Below, piece by piece: positions 36,999-49,847 of a stretch of 64,000 nucleotides of DNA. Position numbers and translations under genes: made by a program. Position 1 is the first letter of the stretch. Every line of letters begins with the position of its first letter. This DNA is from Carpediemonas membranifera BICM (Eukaryota; Protista; Fornicata). The stretch is from assembly GCA_019828565.1 (NCBI GenBank), contig JAHDYR010000016.1:62001-126000 (forward strand), written 5' to 3'. Under the pieces are notes generated by a model. That model was not told where the DNA came from, did no database searches, and saw only the letters and a list, made by a program, of their open reading frames with translations.

Positions 36999-38411
36999 TT
37001 ACCTGAGCTTGAGTGCAATTGACATCAGGGGGACAACTCCGAGGCCGCACACTGTCGCGCTGAGCCCCAGTTGGGGGAGCAGGTCGACGTCTGCCCTGCT
37101 TATTGCTGTAGCCGCACCGCCCAGCAGCGCAAGCACAGCCAGGCCGCGGAGGTCGACCATGGCTCGGAGTGCGTCCATGACGCGGCCAGACTTGGTGAAC
37201 CAGGCCGCGTTAGTCCCCAACCTTAGCGTCAGTGGGCCCAGCCCCAGAGCAATACATGCTGCCGGAGAATAGTGCGACCCAACCCACACCGTACCGATCG
37301 ATATAAGTCCTATCATAAACATGAGAGCGTTATTGGTGCGGAGTTGAGCGGGGTTCAGCGTCGACGCCGCAATATTCTCAAACGGCCCGTTTAGGGCGAA
37401 CAGGGGTAGTGCCAGCCATGAAAGCTGGACCGCCCGCACAACGTCCGGGCCCGAGGTCGGGAACACGACAGACATGGCCAGCGGGGTCAGCGGGCATCCG
37501 AGGGCAACAGCAGCAAAGGCAATGTAGGTCTCGAGTCGCGCCATTCGAAGCAGACCCAGCTTGTCGACGCCACTGTCTCTGGCGGCACGGAGGGCGACCT
37601 GCTCGTCGATGGGAGCGAAGATGAACTTGACAGGCATGCCTGATAGTGTTGCTGAGAGTGCCCAAGCCCCGCTGAACGCACCGGAGGGTGCTGCAAATGC
37701 CATGACAGCCCTCTCGCCCTCGGCCAGCACCAGACGTTGGGCGGAGTTGAGCGTGTATTGGGTCATAAACTGCGAGTCGACTCTGCCCCACTGGGCACGG
37801 GGCTGGGGCTTGACTGAGCGGGACACAGTGGCGAACACGGCGAGGAGGGTGAGTGAGGCGGCTAGTTGCGTGGCGGCCAAGCATGCAGGGGTCCAGGCGG
37901 GAGTGATGGCCTTGGCACTCACCCCAATCGCCACAGCGACTGTAATCACGCTCCTGACGGTTTCAGCGAGCGAGTCGGCGTGTGTCTTGACTTCAATCGA
38001 GTCGGCCAGGAGACAACGGCCCAGGAAGGGTTCGGCCGCCGCCTCGACCAGTGCGGCCATCATGATGATACCGCCGGCTATGGCACCACATGTAAAGGGG
38101 ACGGACTCGGTCATGAGGAGTTCGGGCTTGCTGACAACCAGCATGACAGCCACAACAGCCACCACAGCTGTTATGAGGAAAGGTATGGTCTTGTATGCTG
38201 GGGAGATACGGTGTTCTGTCGAGAATACCCGCATCTGGGTTGTTCGTACGTTCTCGAGAGCTAGGAGCGTGCATACGGTCGTAATGATCTGAAACTGGAC
38301 GGCAGAAAGACTGAAAGCATCTGTAGGTAATCTAGCAGTAATATACATGTTTGATGCGAATGATATGGCGTTTGCAGCCACCTGGCCGCTGAGGATGGAC
38401 AGTAGCCCCAT
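36999..38411 (-). CDS. RFT1: RFT1-like lipid-linked oligosaccharide translocation protein, copy 1
   Basis: Polytopic membrane protein; VEAAAEP, QRLVLAEGER, FIFAPIDE, FALNGPFE. Confidence 0.75.
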   Translation of the reverse strand: MGLLSILSGQVAANAISFASNMYITARLPTDAFSLSAVQFQIITTVCTLLALENVRTTQMRVFSTEHRISPAYKTIPFLITAVVAVVAVMLVVSKPELLMTESVPFTCGAIAGGIIMMAALVEAAAEPFLGRCLLADSIEVKTHADSLAETVRSVITVAVAIGVSAKAITPAWTPACLAATQLAASLTLLAVFATVSRSVKPQPRAQWGRVDSQFMTQYTLNSAQRLVLAEGERAVMAFAAPSGAFSGAWALSATLSGMPVKFIFAPIDEQVALRAARDSGVDKLGLLRMARLETYIAFAAVALGCPLTPLAMSVVFPTSGPDVVRAVQLSWLALPLFALNGPFENIAASTLNPAQLRTNNALMFMIGLISIGTVWVGSHYSPAACIALGLGPLTLRLGTNAAWFTKSGRVMDALRAMVDLRGLAVLALLGGAATAISRADVDLLPQLGLSATVCGLGVVPLMSIALKLR

Positions 38412-38555
38412 CTTGTCTTGATGAGAGCTCGATCCAATCTCGACTCAGGCCCAGTCAAGACTGTAAGGAACAGCATAGAAGGTTTTGGATGTCCAAAGGA
38501 CACGTACTCTTGCACATACAGCCTTCCCAGTCGCCGCCTGACCTAATCTGGCAAT

Positions 38556-39143
38556 ATGAACGCCACGCCCAGTTATGTGGTCCATGTGCATGGACAGGAT
38601 CCACAGTTCCTCGTAGACAAGATAGTTCGTCGGAAGATCTACGATTGCAACTTCTGGAAGGTGTACTGCACCTCGTTGGAGCAGGACACCGTGATCCACC
38701 GCGTTCTCGAGCTGTTCTACGTCGGAGGCACATTCGGCGCATATGAAGAGCCCTCTCCCTTTCTCTGCCTTCTCTTGAAGCTCCTACAGGTTCAGCCACC
38801 GCTCGAACTCGTGACTGGCATCTTCACCCGCTCAACGAACCCTCACGTCCGCGTCCTCGCGGCCATGTACACACGGATGGTCGCCCCGTCCGCCGTGATC
38901 TATGAGACGCTGGAGCCGTTGCTGTTTGACCGAGCCCCCGTCCGAACGAGGGCAGGGATCGAGTGGGGCGAGAGCACCGTTGACACCATCGTCGGGGACC
39001 TCATCGATGACCAGTTCGTGTTCAACATCACCCTGCCCCACCTCGTCGGGCGGCGGTTGCTGGTGGCACGGAATGAGCTTGGGCCGATGGAGTGGCCGGA
39101 GGGCGTCGAGGCCGAAGCCAGGGCGGTAGTCGAGGGCGAGTGA
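38556..39143 (+). CDS. PRP38: Pre-mRNA splicing factor Prp38, copy 1 (intact)
   Basis: HGQDPQFLVDKIVRRKIY, PSPFLCLLLKLLQVQP, YETLEPL. Confidence 0.93.
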   Translation: MNATPSYVVHVHGQDPQFLVDKIVRRKIYDCNFWKVYCTSLEQDTVIHRVLELFYVGGTFGAYEEPSPFLCLLLKLLQVQPPLELVTGIFTRSTNPHVRVLAAMYTRMVAPSAVIYETLEPLLFDRAPVRTRAGIEWGESTVDTIVGDLIDDQFVFNITLPHLVGRRLLVARNELGPMEWPEGVEAEARAVVEGE

Positions 39144-39244
39144 GTGTGGCTCGGCCGTTATGGGGTATATACGCACAGTAAGACATGTCGGTAAATCTCA
39201 ATATCGAGTGACCGTCCGTAACCCGCGTGCCTGCACCGGCGATA

Positions 39245-40089
39245 ATGTCCAATTCAGCAGCAACAAGAGATTGGGCGAAGAGCACGCTCAAACAGCTTCC
39301 TATTAATATAATAATCTCCCTTACCTTCTTTGTAATCACGTTTTTGCTTGAAAGACCAAAGATTTCGGCTGACATCGTTCCCAAGCGCGATTTCAGCCTC
39401 ACAGACGCATCAATATCATTTGTTGCTAAGTCATCCATTGTCCCGTACACAGTAGTCATCGTCTTCATGGTCTCCGTCGTCCTTCTTGCCCCCCTCCTCG
39501 CCCTGCCCGTCAGCCCCGTCCTCTCCGCCGAGATCCTGCTCTCCTCGGCCGTCTGCATCTCAGTACAAGTGTGTCACACCCACCCCGCTCACACAGTACC
39601 TGCTCGTCTCCTTCCTCAAGGTGACGACGGGTCGACTCCGCCCGGACTTCATTTCCCGCTGCGGGTGGGATGCGGTAGCTGACCAGTGTACGGGCGACCC
39701 CAGCACGGTGTTTCAGGGTCGACTTTCGTTCCCCCTCTGGTCATGCGGGGGCGTCCATGTGTGCTAGCATGCTCCTCAGCGCGTCCTTATTCACCGTCTT
39801 CGTCGTCCACCGCAACGACTGGCATCCCAAGGCCCTCAGCACCGCCGTCGGTGTGATCAGCACCCGGGGGTGGGTCGGGGTCAGCTTCTTGCCCGTCCTC
39901 TTCGGCCTCTTTGTCGGACTTACCAGAACCCTGGATCACCACCACCACCCAGGCGACGTGGGAGTCGGCATGGCAATCGGCGCGACCTTCGCAGTGGCAG
40001 CAGTGGCGCTGGCCGAGAGGAGGTTCGACAGATACCAGGCCCAGTGCAGGGCTGGGCGCCACAAGAAGAGCCTGCCGTTGTACACTTAG
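39245..40089 (+). CDS. PAP2 lipid phosphate phosphatase, copy 1; 28-nt intron 39569-39596; extra C near 39731-39735 breaks the frame
   Basis: KVTTGRLRPDF, SFPSGH (shifted in this copy), RTLDHHHHPGDV. Confidence 0.85.
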
Positions 40090-40718
40090 GCGATGGTGTC
40101 ACGTTCATGTCATGTCGCTGTGACTGTGACTGGGCGATAAACAACTGCTGAGGCAGGTATGGCGGCACAGTAAATGTGACATGTCGTTGCAACATGTTTT
40201 AGTGGATTGGGGGTCTGCCCACGATTGCTCGGAAATATCGCCGCGAGATTCTCGCCCCACAAACTGATGACTAGGACATACAAATGCACTCCCGCGATCC
40301 GCTGACCCTACCAGCGATTGCACGTCTTCTGGCTCATCCCCAGTGTGCCGTGCTAGGGCCCAGAATTATGATAAAGACTGTTTACGACTTCCGCAGGTTA
40401 AGGGCACACCAGTTCAGTTTTTCAATTCCAAATTTTGGACGACGAAATGAGTCCCCGCTCTACCCGGACTAGACTAGACCTAGCCAATACGCCATAGTTA
40501 CACAACAAACGGCTAGTAGCGATCGTGGCTCAGGTATGCCAAGGCGAGGGCACGGTCTCAATCAAATGCCGTCAACAGGTCATGAATCTGACAGAGAACA
40601 AGATCAAGACGGTTATTGACACATTTCGAGCAATCATCATTTCTGTCAGGCAACAGCCAATTTTTGTGTGAGAAAAATGGGACGAGTGAAAAAATGTGAT
40701 TGGATCATTTTTTTGGTC

Positions 40719-40877
40719 ATACTTACCATTGGAGGCCATATGTCCCTCAAGAACGACGTTGGCGATCTAGGAGTGCTACACGTTTGTGGTTGGTGCACCT
40801 AGGTCCTCGCTGGCTGGTCTAAGGCCTGGCGAGATCCTCTTATTTGTTCCAGCGGAGAAGGCGTTCGCGCCGCTCCT
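40719..40877 (+). ncRNA. U1: U1 spliceosomal snRNA, copy 1
   Basis: 5' AUACUUACC; four-way junction with SL1-SL3; Sm site AUUUGU at 40842; terminal hairpin GGCG-UUCG-CGCC; about 159 nt. Confidence 0.88.
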
Positions 40878-41313
40878 ACCCCCCAACTAACAACATCAAA
40901 ACGACGGTATTGTGGTGTAAATTTCTTGTTTGGTCGTTCTCATGTGCATGATGATGTACAGAACTGGTCAGATCACTAATGCAGGGTAAAGCAACCGAGC
41001 AGGAAGAGGAGACCCCTGACCAGGCCTGCAAGCTCAACCACCCAGAATCCCAGGTAAACGATATGTGTCAGCCACATTCTCGTGGATAGAATGTCCTTTT
41101 GGCTTTGCAATCGGCACTGTTTGAGTAGATCTTCGCTCCCACCTTCTCTTCCTAATCGGTCTAATTAGAGCACAAAAATAGCCGCGCAATACATGGTGTA
41201 TGCGTGCTAGAGTCAACACCTTACCCAACACTTGACAATATCCCCAGTGACAACCCGCCATTCAATTTCGCAGATTATGTCACGACGCCGCGGGCAAGCT
41301 TCAACTCGGGATT

Positions 41314-42621
41314 ATGAGCTCGGCCTCCCCTGCTTCGAAGCGAACAGTGTCATTCTTCCATGATCCCGACTTTGGGCAGCACTACTTAGGCCCTGAGCAT
41401 GCGATGAAGCCGTTCCGGTTCGCCTTGACGTGTGAGCTAGTAATGAGCTACGGACTGCATGAACAGATGTCTATATACAGCCCACGACTGCTTTCTAGCA
41501 TGGAGATGACCAAGTTCCACACCGAGGAGTACGTCAGCTTCCTGCAGCAAGTCGCCCCCGACGGCCCCGTCTCACAGTCCGAGCCCAACCCATTCAACAT
41601 CGGGGAAGACTGCCCGTCGTTTGTGGGGCTCTTCCCGTACTGCCAGCGCTCCTGTGGCGGCAGTGTGACTGGCGCGGCCCATCTTATCGCGGGGCACTCC
41701 GACATTGCCGTCAATTGGATGGGTGGCATGCACCACGCCAAGAGGAACGAGGCCAGTGGATTCTGCTACGCTAATGACATTGTCCTGGGCATCCTGGAGC
41801 TGCTGAAGTTCATTCCGCGCGTGCTCTACATCGACATCGACATCCACCACGGCGACGGCGTAGAAGAGGCCTTCTACACTACGGACAGGGTCATGACAGT
41901 ATCCTTCCACAAGCACGGCAACTCCTTCTTTCCTGGCACGGGCGCAGTGTCCGACGCGGGTGTCGGTCCCGGACTCGGCTACGCCGTGAACGTGCCGCTC
42001 AACGACGGCATGGACGACGAAAGCTACACCACGCTGTTCAAGGCCGTCATCCGGGACGTCATGGAGCACTTCAGGCCCGGCGCTATCGTGCTTCAGTGCG
42101 GCGCTGACTCCCTCGCGAACGACAGGCTCGGTTGCTTCAACCTGACCATCGGCGGACATGGCGAGTGCGTGGATTTCGTCAAGTCCCTCGGCCTGCCGCT
42201 CATGGTGCTCGGCGGGGGCGGCTACACGCTGCCCAATGTTGCCCGCTGCTGGGCTTATGAGACGGCTTTGTGTGTGGGCGCGAGGATTCCAGAGGAGGTG
42301 CCCAAGCATGAGTTTTACGAGTACTACGGGCCCGATTACTGTCTTAACATTGTCAAGAACAACCAGCAGAACATGAATACGCGCGAGGACTTCGATCGGC
42401 TTTATCAGAAGGTATACACCCAGCTCCGGTCGATACAGCCGGCGCCAGGGGTCGGGTTGACCTCCATGCCGGCTGGGGTGGGCCTGGACCTTCAGGCGGA
42501 CATCGACATGGGCGAGGATAGTGCGGGCAACTCCAGGGTGACGGCCACAGCGGCGGACCTGGGCCGGACACTGGATGCCGAGGACAGGCGAGGGCTCAGG
42601 CCAAGTGAGTTTGTAGATTAA
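41314..42621 (+). CDS. HDAC1: Class I histone deacetylase (RPD3/HDAC1), copy 1
   Basis: HAMKP, GGMHHAK, SGFCYAND, DIDIHHGDGVEEAFY, CGADSL, GGGGY. Confidence 0.96.
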   Translation: MSSASPASKRTVSFFHDPDFGQHYLGPEHAMKPFRFALTCELVMSYGLHEQMSIYSPRLLSSMEMTKFHTEEYVSFLQQVAPDGPVSQSEPNPFNIGEDCPSFVGLFPYCQRSCGGSVTGAAHLIAGHSDIAVNWMGGMHHAKRNEASGFCYANDIVLGILELLKFIPRVLYIDIDIHHGDGVEEAFYTTDRVMTVSFHKHGNSFFPGTGAVSDAGVGPGLGYAVNVPLNDGMDDESYTTLFKAVIRDVMEHFRPGAIVLQCGADSLANDRLGCFNLTIGGHGECVDFVKSLGLPLMVLGGGGYTLPNVARCWAYETALCVGARIPEEVPKHEFYEYYGPDYCLNIVKNNQQNMNTREDFDRLYQKVYTQLRSIQPAPGVGLTSMPAGVGLDLQADIDMGEDSAGNSRVTATAADLGRTLDAEDRRGLRPSEFVD

Positions 42622-42773
42622 AGCTAGTAGGCTGGGAGAAAGGGGTGGGGACGCATTGGGGTTTCAATGACGTGGCGGCATCACTCTGCTAGTGGTCTGT
42701 GCAGCTTTGAGCATTCGTTCCACTTAAGATCGCCCAGTTTGCGCGTGTGCACTTTAAGGCTAACTGGAATCCC

Positions 42774-43427
42774 ATGGTCTCGGAGACGGAGCAAGCCACC
42801 ATCAGGAGACCTGTTGTGCTCAATGGTCCTAGCGGAGTTGGGAAGAGCACCATCATCAAGCAGCTCATGAGGAAGTATCCTGGCGAGTTCGTTTTCGCCG
42901 TCTCTCACACTTCCAGGCCAATGCGGGCCGGTGAGGAGGACGGAAAGGACTACCACTTCAAGACTCGCGAAGAGATAGAGGATCTCCGCGCCCGTGGCCT
43001 TATGCTGGAGACTGCTGAGGTGCACGACAATATCTACGGGACCAGTGTCCAGGCTGTCGAGTCCGAGCTCGGTACCAGTGTCTGCATCCTCGATGTCGAC
43101 TACCAAGGCGCCCTGTCGTGCAAGCGGTACTACTCAGACAAGCCGGTCCGCCCGTTGTACATCTTCGTCGGGCCCTCTGACCTCGACCCGGAGACCGTCT
43201 GCCAGACCATCGAGAAGCGACTGAGACTCCGCGGGACAGAGAGTGAAGAGACTATCCAGAAACGGCTGACGACTGCCGGCCGTGAGCTGGAATTCTTCCA
43301 CTCGAACCCCGGGTTTTACGATCACGTCATCATCAACAAGGACGGGGCCCTCGACGAGACTGTGGCGAAGGTCGAGGAGATCTTCATGCAGGAGACCGTC
43401 CTCCTCGCTAGCCCTGTGCAGGCTTAG
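42774..43427 (+). CDS. GUK1: Guanylate kinase, copy 1
   Basis: GPSGVGKST, VSHTSRPMRAGEEDGKDYHF, YGTS, RLRLRGTE. Confidence 0.95.
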   Translation: MVSETEQATIRRPVVLNGPSGVGKSTIIKQLMRKYPGEFVFAVSHTSRPMRAGEEDGKDYHFKTREEIEDLRARGLMLETAEVHDNIYGTSVQAVESELGTSVCILDVDYQGALSCKRYYSDKPVRPLYIFVGPSDLDPETVCQTIEKRLRLRGTESEETIQKRLTTAGRELEFFHSNPGFYDHVIINKDGALDETVAKVEEIFMQETVLLASPVQA

Positions 43428-49253: not shown

Positions 49254-49412
49254 ATACTTACCATTGGAGGCCATATGTCCCTCAAGAACGACGTTGGCGA
49301 TCTAGGAGTGCTACACGTTTGTGGTTGGTGCACCTAGGTCCTCGCTGGCTGGTCTAAGGCCTGGCGAGATCCTCTTATTTGTTCCAGCGGAGAAGGCGTT
49401 CGCGCCGCTCCT
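49254..49412 (+). ncRNA. U1: U1 spliceosomal snRNA, copy 2
   Basis: Same sequence as 40719-40877. Confidence 0.88.
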
Positions 49413-49847
49413 ACCCCCAACTAACAACATCAAAACGACGGTATTGTGGTGTAAATTTCTTGTTTGGTCGTTCTCATGTGCATGATGATGTACAGAACTG
49501 GTCAGATCACTAATGCAGGGTAAAGCAACCGAGCAGGAAGAGGAGACCCCTGACCAGGCCTGCAAGCTCAACCACCCAGAATCCCAGGTAAACGATATGT
49601 GTCAGCCACATTCTCGTGGATAGAATGTCCTTTTGGCTTTGCAATCGGCACTGTTTGAGTAGATCTTCGCTCCCACCTTCTCTTCCTAATCGGTCTAATT
49701 AGAGCACAAAAATAGCCGCGCAATACATGGTGTATGCGTGCTAGAGTCAACACCTTACCCAACACTTGACAATATCCCCAGTGACAACCCGCCATTCAAT
49801 TTCGCAGATTATGTCACGACGCCGCGGGCAAGCTTCAACTCGGGATT

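Follow-up and report, generated by a model that had tools for sequence, protein, structure and literature searches.

The window analysed here is the whole 64,000-nucleotide stretch of Carpediemonas membranifera DNA. Carpediemonas is a free-living, intron-bearing relative of Giardia, an organism with an extremely reduced spliceosome. A divergent U1 snRNA gene occupies a non-coding spacer of the window, as the original prediction had proposed; the spacer is overlapped by chance open reading frames only, none longer than 75 aa. The gene at 40719 and a further gene at 49254 are two of three near-identical U1 copies in the genome. The second copy had been recognized beforehand and has a body identical to that of the first, but the total of two did not stand: a DNA search of the genome (24,237,836 bases, 69 contigs, approx. 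57% GC) adds a third at G000:C68:292487-292668 (L017 1319-1500). Each U1 element listed in the original prediction is present where it had been placed. The features of the locus are as follows.

40708..40714, forward strand: run of seven T residues (-11 to -5), possibly an AT-rich initiator region
40719..40878, forward strand: U1 snRNA gene, copy 1, approx. 160 nt (Rfam U1 model over positions 1-166; cDNA start)
40719..40727, forward strand: 5' splice-site recognition sequence AUACUUACC, predicted single-stranded (identical to the U1 consensus; unpaired probability above 0.93 per base)
40731..40734 with 40837..40840, forward strand: helix H, GGAG with CUCU (sequence reading)
40735..40763, forward strand: stem-loop 1 (SL1), with the 10-nt loop CCUCAAGAAC at 40745-40754, putative U1-70K site
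40764..40805, forward strand: stem-loop 2 (SL2), closed by GAUCUAGG/CCUAGGUC, a predicted long helix with a GUUU tip
40806..40833, forward strand: stem-loop 3 (SL3), CUCGCUGG/CUGGCGAG (folding prediction)
40841..40848, forward strand: Sm site UAUUUGUU
40854..40876, forward strand: stem-loop 4 (SL4), GCGUUCGCGC with a UUCG tetraloop (covariance model alignment and fold)
40888..40899, forward strand: 3' motif TAACAACATCAA, candidate 3'-end processing signal, starting 10 nt after U1 copy 1
49254..49413, forward strand: U1 snRNA gene, copy 2, within an 8.5-kb tandem duplication
49422..49433, forward strand: 3' motif TAACAACATCAA after U1 copy 2 (sequence match)

The Rfam U1 model RF00003 is matched end to end by 40719-40878. 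With reporting by E-value, the alignment covers all 166 model positions at 36.4 bits (E 8.5e-8 locally, 1.2e-6 genome-wide), and its full length bears out the U1-like order and size of the elements. U1 is the sole significant Rfam family in the region. The model search that had been suggested as a check thus returned a match, but one below the gathering score: 36.4 bits is about half of the 69.5 set by Rfam, so annotation at standard thresholds leaves the locus uncalled. Application of the gathering thresholds to the whole window yields zero matches. The gathering threshold is an annotation rule and no biological feature.

Conservation is unevenly distributed along the RNA. AUACUUACC constitutes U1 positions +1 to +9, and the unusual A expected at position 10 is confirmed, positions 10-11 being AU, not UG. 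The SL1 loop is unpaired at a predicted probability above 0.9. This loop had been described as unusual. The description holds for three flanking bases, which deviate from the consensus GA and G, but not for the core UCAAGAA, which agrees with the Rfam consensus GAUCAaGAAG at 7/7 positions; the oddity of the loop was therefore overstated. The Sm site, with the core AUUUGUU, is aligned to the Rfam Sm region AUAAUUUgUG with high posterior probability, and the SL4 sequence is conserved relative to the Rfam consensus. SL2 and SL3 align poorly to that consensus, and the SL2 portion of the alignment is of low posterior probability. That SL2 lacks an AUUGCAC loop was correctly foreseen: the UGGUGC bases are predicted to be paired with a probability above 0.95, and a U1A-type heptamer is nowhere exposed in the predicted U1 fold.

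Folding was a further check attached to the original prediction. The unconstrained minimum free energy (MFE) structure contains SL1, SL2, SL3 and SL4, with an MFE z-score of only -1.72. It pairs part of the Sm site in place of helix H. The cloverleaf with helix H has an energy of -55.3 versus -59.5 kcal/mol for the MFE structure and is 4.2 kcal/mol costlier. A four-way junction of helix H and SL1-SL3, followed by the Sm site and a 3' hairpin, is the predicted architecture, and the evidence for it is of two kinds, thermodynamics and model alignment. The sole variant among the three copies (A51 to U) breaks, and does not compensate, a predicted pair. A scan of metagenome contigs for U1 relatives with the pattern ATACTTACCAT-N14-20-CCTCAAGAAC gave 10 matches, none with U1 features; eight of them represent one repeated family.

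Expression was assessed with contigs from four small public runs (X1-X4) of one sample and one study, for which the library type is a guess. Contigs of this kind yield neither a 3' end nor abundance, nor phased variants. Together they cover 40719-40900. Over the spacers 39870-40704 and 41039-41205 the depth is zero, neighbouring genes in the interval examined (38200-43200) are also covered, and a 28-nt GT..AG intron at 39569-39596 is spliced out. With spacers uncovered, genes covered and an intron removed, the contigs behave as cDNA. In three runs contigs start exactly at A40719, directly behind CTCTGGACCTTGGCTGTCACTCAAA, a sequence absent from the genome. CTCTGGACCTTGGCTGTCACTCAAA is the 3'-terminal portion of the RNA adaptor GAATTCCTCTGGACCTTGGCTGTCACTCAAA, which published cDNA protocols attach by ligation to the 5' ends of RNA (PMC1838911); a primer related to this adaptor appears in PMC2889816. 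Because a ligation adaptor that the genome does not contain is joined exactly at 40719, the 5' end of the U1 RNA is A40719, the transcript start that had been predicted. This 5' end counts as one independent observation. A role of CTCTGGACCTTGGCTGTCACTCAAA as a spliced leader was considered and rejected: it is absent from the genome, no AG precedes either junction, and the sequence is identical to the published ligation adaptor. The same adaptor also marks an mRNA 5' end at window position 42762, immediately behind CTTTAAGGCT. The ATG follows after 12 nt, at 42774, which points to a very short 5' untranslated region, as in other metamonads.

T or A runs occur shortly upstream of most U2 copies and one U4 copy; they are absent upstream of the C68 U1. 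Beyond such runs, no shared promoter motif was found in the upstream regions of U1, U2, U4 and U6. A GTGA(G)AAAAATG repeat is absent from the C68 copy. A scan for bacterial promoters and terminators was uninformative.

The third copy raises the question of which gene supplies the RNA. The C68 copy differs from the window copies by one substitution, A51 to U, equivalent to window position 40769 and disrupting one A-U pair in the SL2 stem. Contigs of X1-X3 carry this variant (T at 40769) and then run for at least 250 nt into the C68 flank, which fits either a 3'-extended precursor or a read-through transcript of the C68 copy. Evidence for expression of the window copies consequently comes from X4 only, in which a contig with a depth of 390 has A at 40769; an A at this position is specific to the window copies in the assembly. 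One could argue from this distribution that the C68 copy is the only working U1, the window copies being duplicates from the 8.5-kb tandem duplication that are transcribed poorly or not at all. In keeping with such a view, none of the contigs extends into the 3' flank proper to the window (40901-41205), and the C17 and C68 copies have unrelated upstream regions. The X4 contig opposes it, as do the intact bodies and retained 3' motifs of the window copies. Moreover, mature RNAs of copies one base apart are poorly separable by contigs. We consider silence of the window copies unlikely.

The C17 and C68 genes are homologous over -2 to +182 only, a span that opens at the transcript start and closes shortly beyond the 3' motif; outside it, their flanks are unrelated. 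The U2 copies are likewise homologous only from AGTCTTCTTCGA to the 3' motif. Judged from sequence, this limitation to the transcribed unit suggests RNA-mediated copying or gene conversion. The two window copies themselves differ in a homopolymer of the trailer, which has six C residues in copy 1 (40879-40884) and five in copy 2 (49414-49418).

Restricted homology of this type is what an RNA-mediated copy would leave, and all three loci might then be retrocopies or pseudogenes of a functional U1 located elsewhere or in unassembled sequence. The first-look Rfam search missed the C68 copy and is thus not exhaustive. A genome pattern scan speaks to the contrary. The combination of the U1 5' end and the SL1 loop core is found at the three U1 loci and at no other; the pattern ATACTTACC-N14-26-TCAMGAA has three matches in 24 Mb and none in the reversed control. 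This restriction makes a more canonical U1 elsewhere, a possibility raised with the original prediction, unlikely. In addition, the published assembly is reported to be approx. 99% complete (PMC8516963), expression of the U1 copies begins at a precise 5' end, they have no poly(A) tails, and their decay amounts to one substitution. The pseudogene explanation is very improbable. Chance resemblance or membership of another RNA class, such as U11 or the snoRNAs, draws on the sub-threshold score and on weak snoRNA matches that overlap the region (E 5-9), but is negligible against a full-length match to the only significant family, a U1-type (ACUUACC) and not U11-type 5' end, an Sm site, SL4 and SL1 loop core in U1 order, and three conserved, expressed copies.

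The preferred reading is that 40719-40878 and its copies form a genuine, transcribed U1 snRNA gene family of C. membranifera, with a probability of roughly nine in ten. The genome paper of this organism does not mention snRNAs (PMC8516963), and no report of Carpediemonas snRNAs was found in the literature searched.

Other spliceosomal RNAs of the genome were identified by their Rfam models. U2 is represented by six loci at 57-68 bits, above the gathering score. Two U4 loci and one U6 locus were found, all below their Rfam gathering scores, and the U4 5' end is complementary to U6 CCCUGUGCAAGGUC. With U1, U4 and U6 below threshold, annotation at standard settings would overlook the majority of the snRNAs here. 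U5 was not found in the whole genome by the Rfam model or by a pattern combining loop I with the 3' motif. In the U2 genes the branch-site region is AAGUGAAGU instead of GUGUAGUA (L003-L008, e.g. G000:C63:801904-802087). Conservation in U2 also reaches approx. 13-19 nt further upstream than the Rfam match, and the true U2 5' end thus probably lies near AGUCUUCUUCGA.

The 3' motif is a feature common to several of these genes. In 11/11 copies (three U1, six U2 and two U4), the predicted 3' end has a core AAYATCAR, with TAA before it, no more than 15 nt away, against a chance expectation of 0.017 per locus for a core near a gene end. No such motif is present in the 150 nt that follow U6, whose end, T5, is of the kind expected for a Pol III gene. 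Genome-wide, TAAYAAYATCAR has 425 matches compared with 27 for the reversed control; many of these are in repeated small units, which partly inflates the excess. Twenty loci bearing TAAYAAYATCAR matched no known Rfam family. Many TAAYAAYATCAR matches terminate units of approx. 55-60 nt that are themselves preceded by a T-run and a conserved GGCTTCGTTSGCGAGTTCTCG-like element (e.g. L074, L082, L089, L091, L083, L076; G000:C1). These units could represent either a repeat or the members of one large, unannotated small RNA gene family. On this analysis, TAACAACATCAA is probably an snRNA 3'-end processing signal. Contigs pass through the motif into the C68 flank, and the U1 3' end would probably be formed in a longer precursor, at TAACAACATCAA or close to it, in a manner like that of Giardia and with another sequence.

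Introns in the vicinity are consistent with the small size anticipated in the original prediction. Five local introns measure 28-40 nt, and cDNA confirms one of them (window 39569-39596; L012 1461-1500 and 1576-1606; L049, minus strand). Two start with GTATGT, two with GTTCGT and one with GTGTGT. All five end in CTNAYNCAG, a fused branch and 3' site, which we take to resemble the Giardia and Trichomonas motif of the ACTAACACACAG type. Their invariant positions +1, +2, +5 and +6 are complementary to C8, A7, C4 and A3 of U1. The single-stranded ACUUAC of U1 would accordingly be expected, from complementarity, to pair with these four positions of short GTDYGT introns.

The protein partners of U1 were sought in the genome, with U1C and U1A-like proteins searched exon by exon, by reference. 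Of the three proteins named for this check, U1C and one U1A/U2B''-type protein were recovered, but U1-70K is probable only and very divergent. The U1C gene is clearly present, with a zf-U1 domain at 32 bits and two gene copies that have introns of 40 and 31 nt. The U1-70K candidate, P0001 (233 aa), matches U1snRNP70_N (PF12220) at 18.8-20.7 bits, under the cut-off of 23, and is 98% identical to the NCBI hypothetical protein J8273_3490 [Carpediemonas membranifera]. A single-sequence search of P0001 against the PDB gave no match, and an exhaustive HMMER search found only one homologue. With a two-sequence profile of P0001 and this homologue, the top five of 177,635 PDB sequences are human and yeast U1-70K and U11/U12-35K. 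These matches have E-values of 0.006-0.02, and their alignment takes in RNP1 as well as the ...G(F/W)xPxRLGGG tail. The protein atlas describes the C-terminal half of P0001 as RRM-like and adds nothing further. P0001 is thus a probable U1-70K, although the assignment is a weak one.

One of 48 RRM matches is of the U1A/U2B'' type (C11:472521-472685, minus strand, with RGQAFIVF). Among its single-domain PDB matches, U2B'' and U1A score best, with E-values of 4e-13 to 1e-12, and the gene appears to encode a single RRM in a protein of approx. 110 aa. A perfect AUUGCAC is found in U2 stem-loop IV, not in U1. The single U1A/U2B''-like protein may therefore serve U2 only, a proposition to which we give about even odds; that U1A binding has been lost from U1 stands at a similar balance.

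These elements can be combined in a model of the particle. The U1 RNA would fold as the predicted cloverleaf with a 3' hairpin. The Sm ring would be loaded on the Sm site, U1-70K would be bound via the UCAAGAA core of SL1, and U1C would join. SL2 would have lost its U1A-type loop and been remodelled to a closed helix. The combined proposal has two parts: a U1 snRNP with U1-70K and U1C and without U1A, the lone U1A/U2B''-type RRM acting on U2; and Sm-class snRNAs that are finished by a lineage-specific 12-nt signal, TAACAACATCAA, which marks hundreds of loci. Taken as a whole, it is tentative and may well not hold in full.

A U1 RNA is expected in an intron-bearing organism. More noteworthy are the remodelled SL2 and a 3' signal common to the U1, U2 and U4 genes. 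With the 5' end mapped and a 3' motif in common, there are handles for annotating the small RNAs still missing here. They would also make it possible to ask whether 3' processing that depends on a motif predates the diplomonads. To our knowledge, a motif-driven pathway of ncRNA processing has so far been described only in Giardia; if the present proposal is true, the TAACAACATCAA signal would be its counterpart in a free-living organism.

Human U1 is 164 nt long. Canonical U1 (RF00003) and the Carpediemonas RNA share the same order and size, with 5' AUACUUACC, helix H, the UCAAGAA core, SL2, SL3, Sm AUUUGU and SL4 GCGUUCGCGC. The main departure from the family norm is the SL2 AUUGCAC loop, present in canonical U1 and missing in Carpediemonas; this loop is treated here as a typical, not a defining, feature of U1. 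Lesser differences are the SL1 loop flanks (CC..C in Carpediemonas, GA..G in canonical U1) and positions 10-11 (AU versus UG). The SL2 U1A site is also divergent in the U1 of Giardia and yeast (PMC3510501).

The U1 of Giardia lamblia, a fornicate relative, is a divergent cloverleaf, the ACUUAC 5' end of which pairs with a GUAUGU-type 5' splice site (PMC3510501). It is without SL4 and the U1-70K loop sequence and keeps a yeast-like U1A site, CGCAUAC (PMC3510501); neither a U1-70K nor a U1A protein was found in Giardia (Hudson et al. 2012, PMC3510501). In Carpediemonas, by contrast, SL4, the 70K loop core and the proteins are kept, whereas the U1A-type loop is lost. With SL4, the 70K core and the U1C and U1-70K genes retained, Carpediemonas U1 would offer an intermediate state from which the order of U1 snRNP losses in fornicates might be read.

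In Giardia, AT-rich sequence lies before the U1 gene and a conserved 12-nt 3' motif lies after it (PMC3510501). The 3' motifs of the two organisms are alike in position, and both occur at many other loci of their genomes. Their sequences are unrelated (Giardia TCCTTTACTCAA, Carpediemonas TAACAACATCAA), and the Carpediemonas motif TAAYAAYATCAR does not conform to the Giardia consensus [TAC]C[CA]TT[TC]NNT[CTA]AA. The metazoan 3' box/Integrator and yeast Nrd1-Nab3 systems likewise use signals downstream of Pol II snRNA genes, which have no sequence similarity to the Carpediemonas motif. As with those Pol II signals, the Carpediemonas motif is confined to genes other than the Pol III-type U6.
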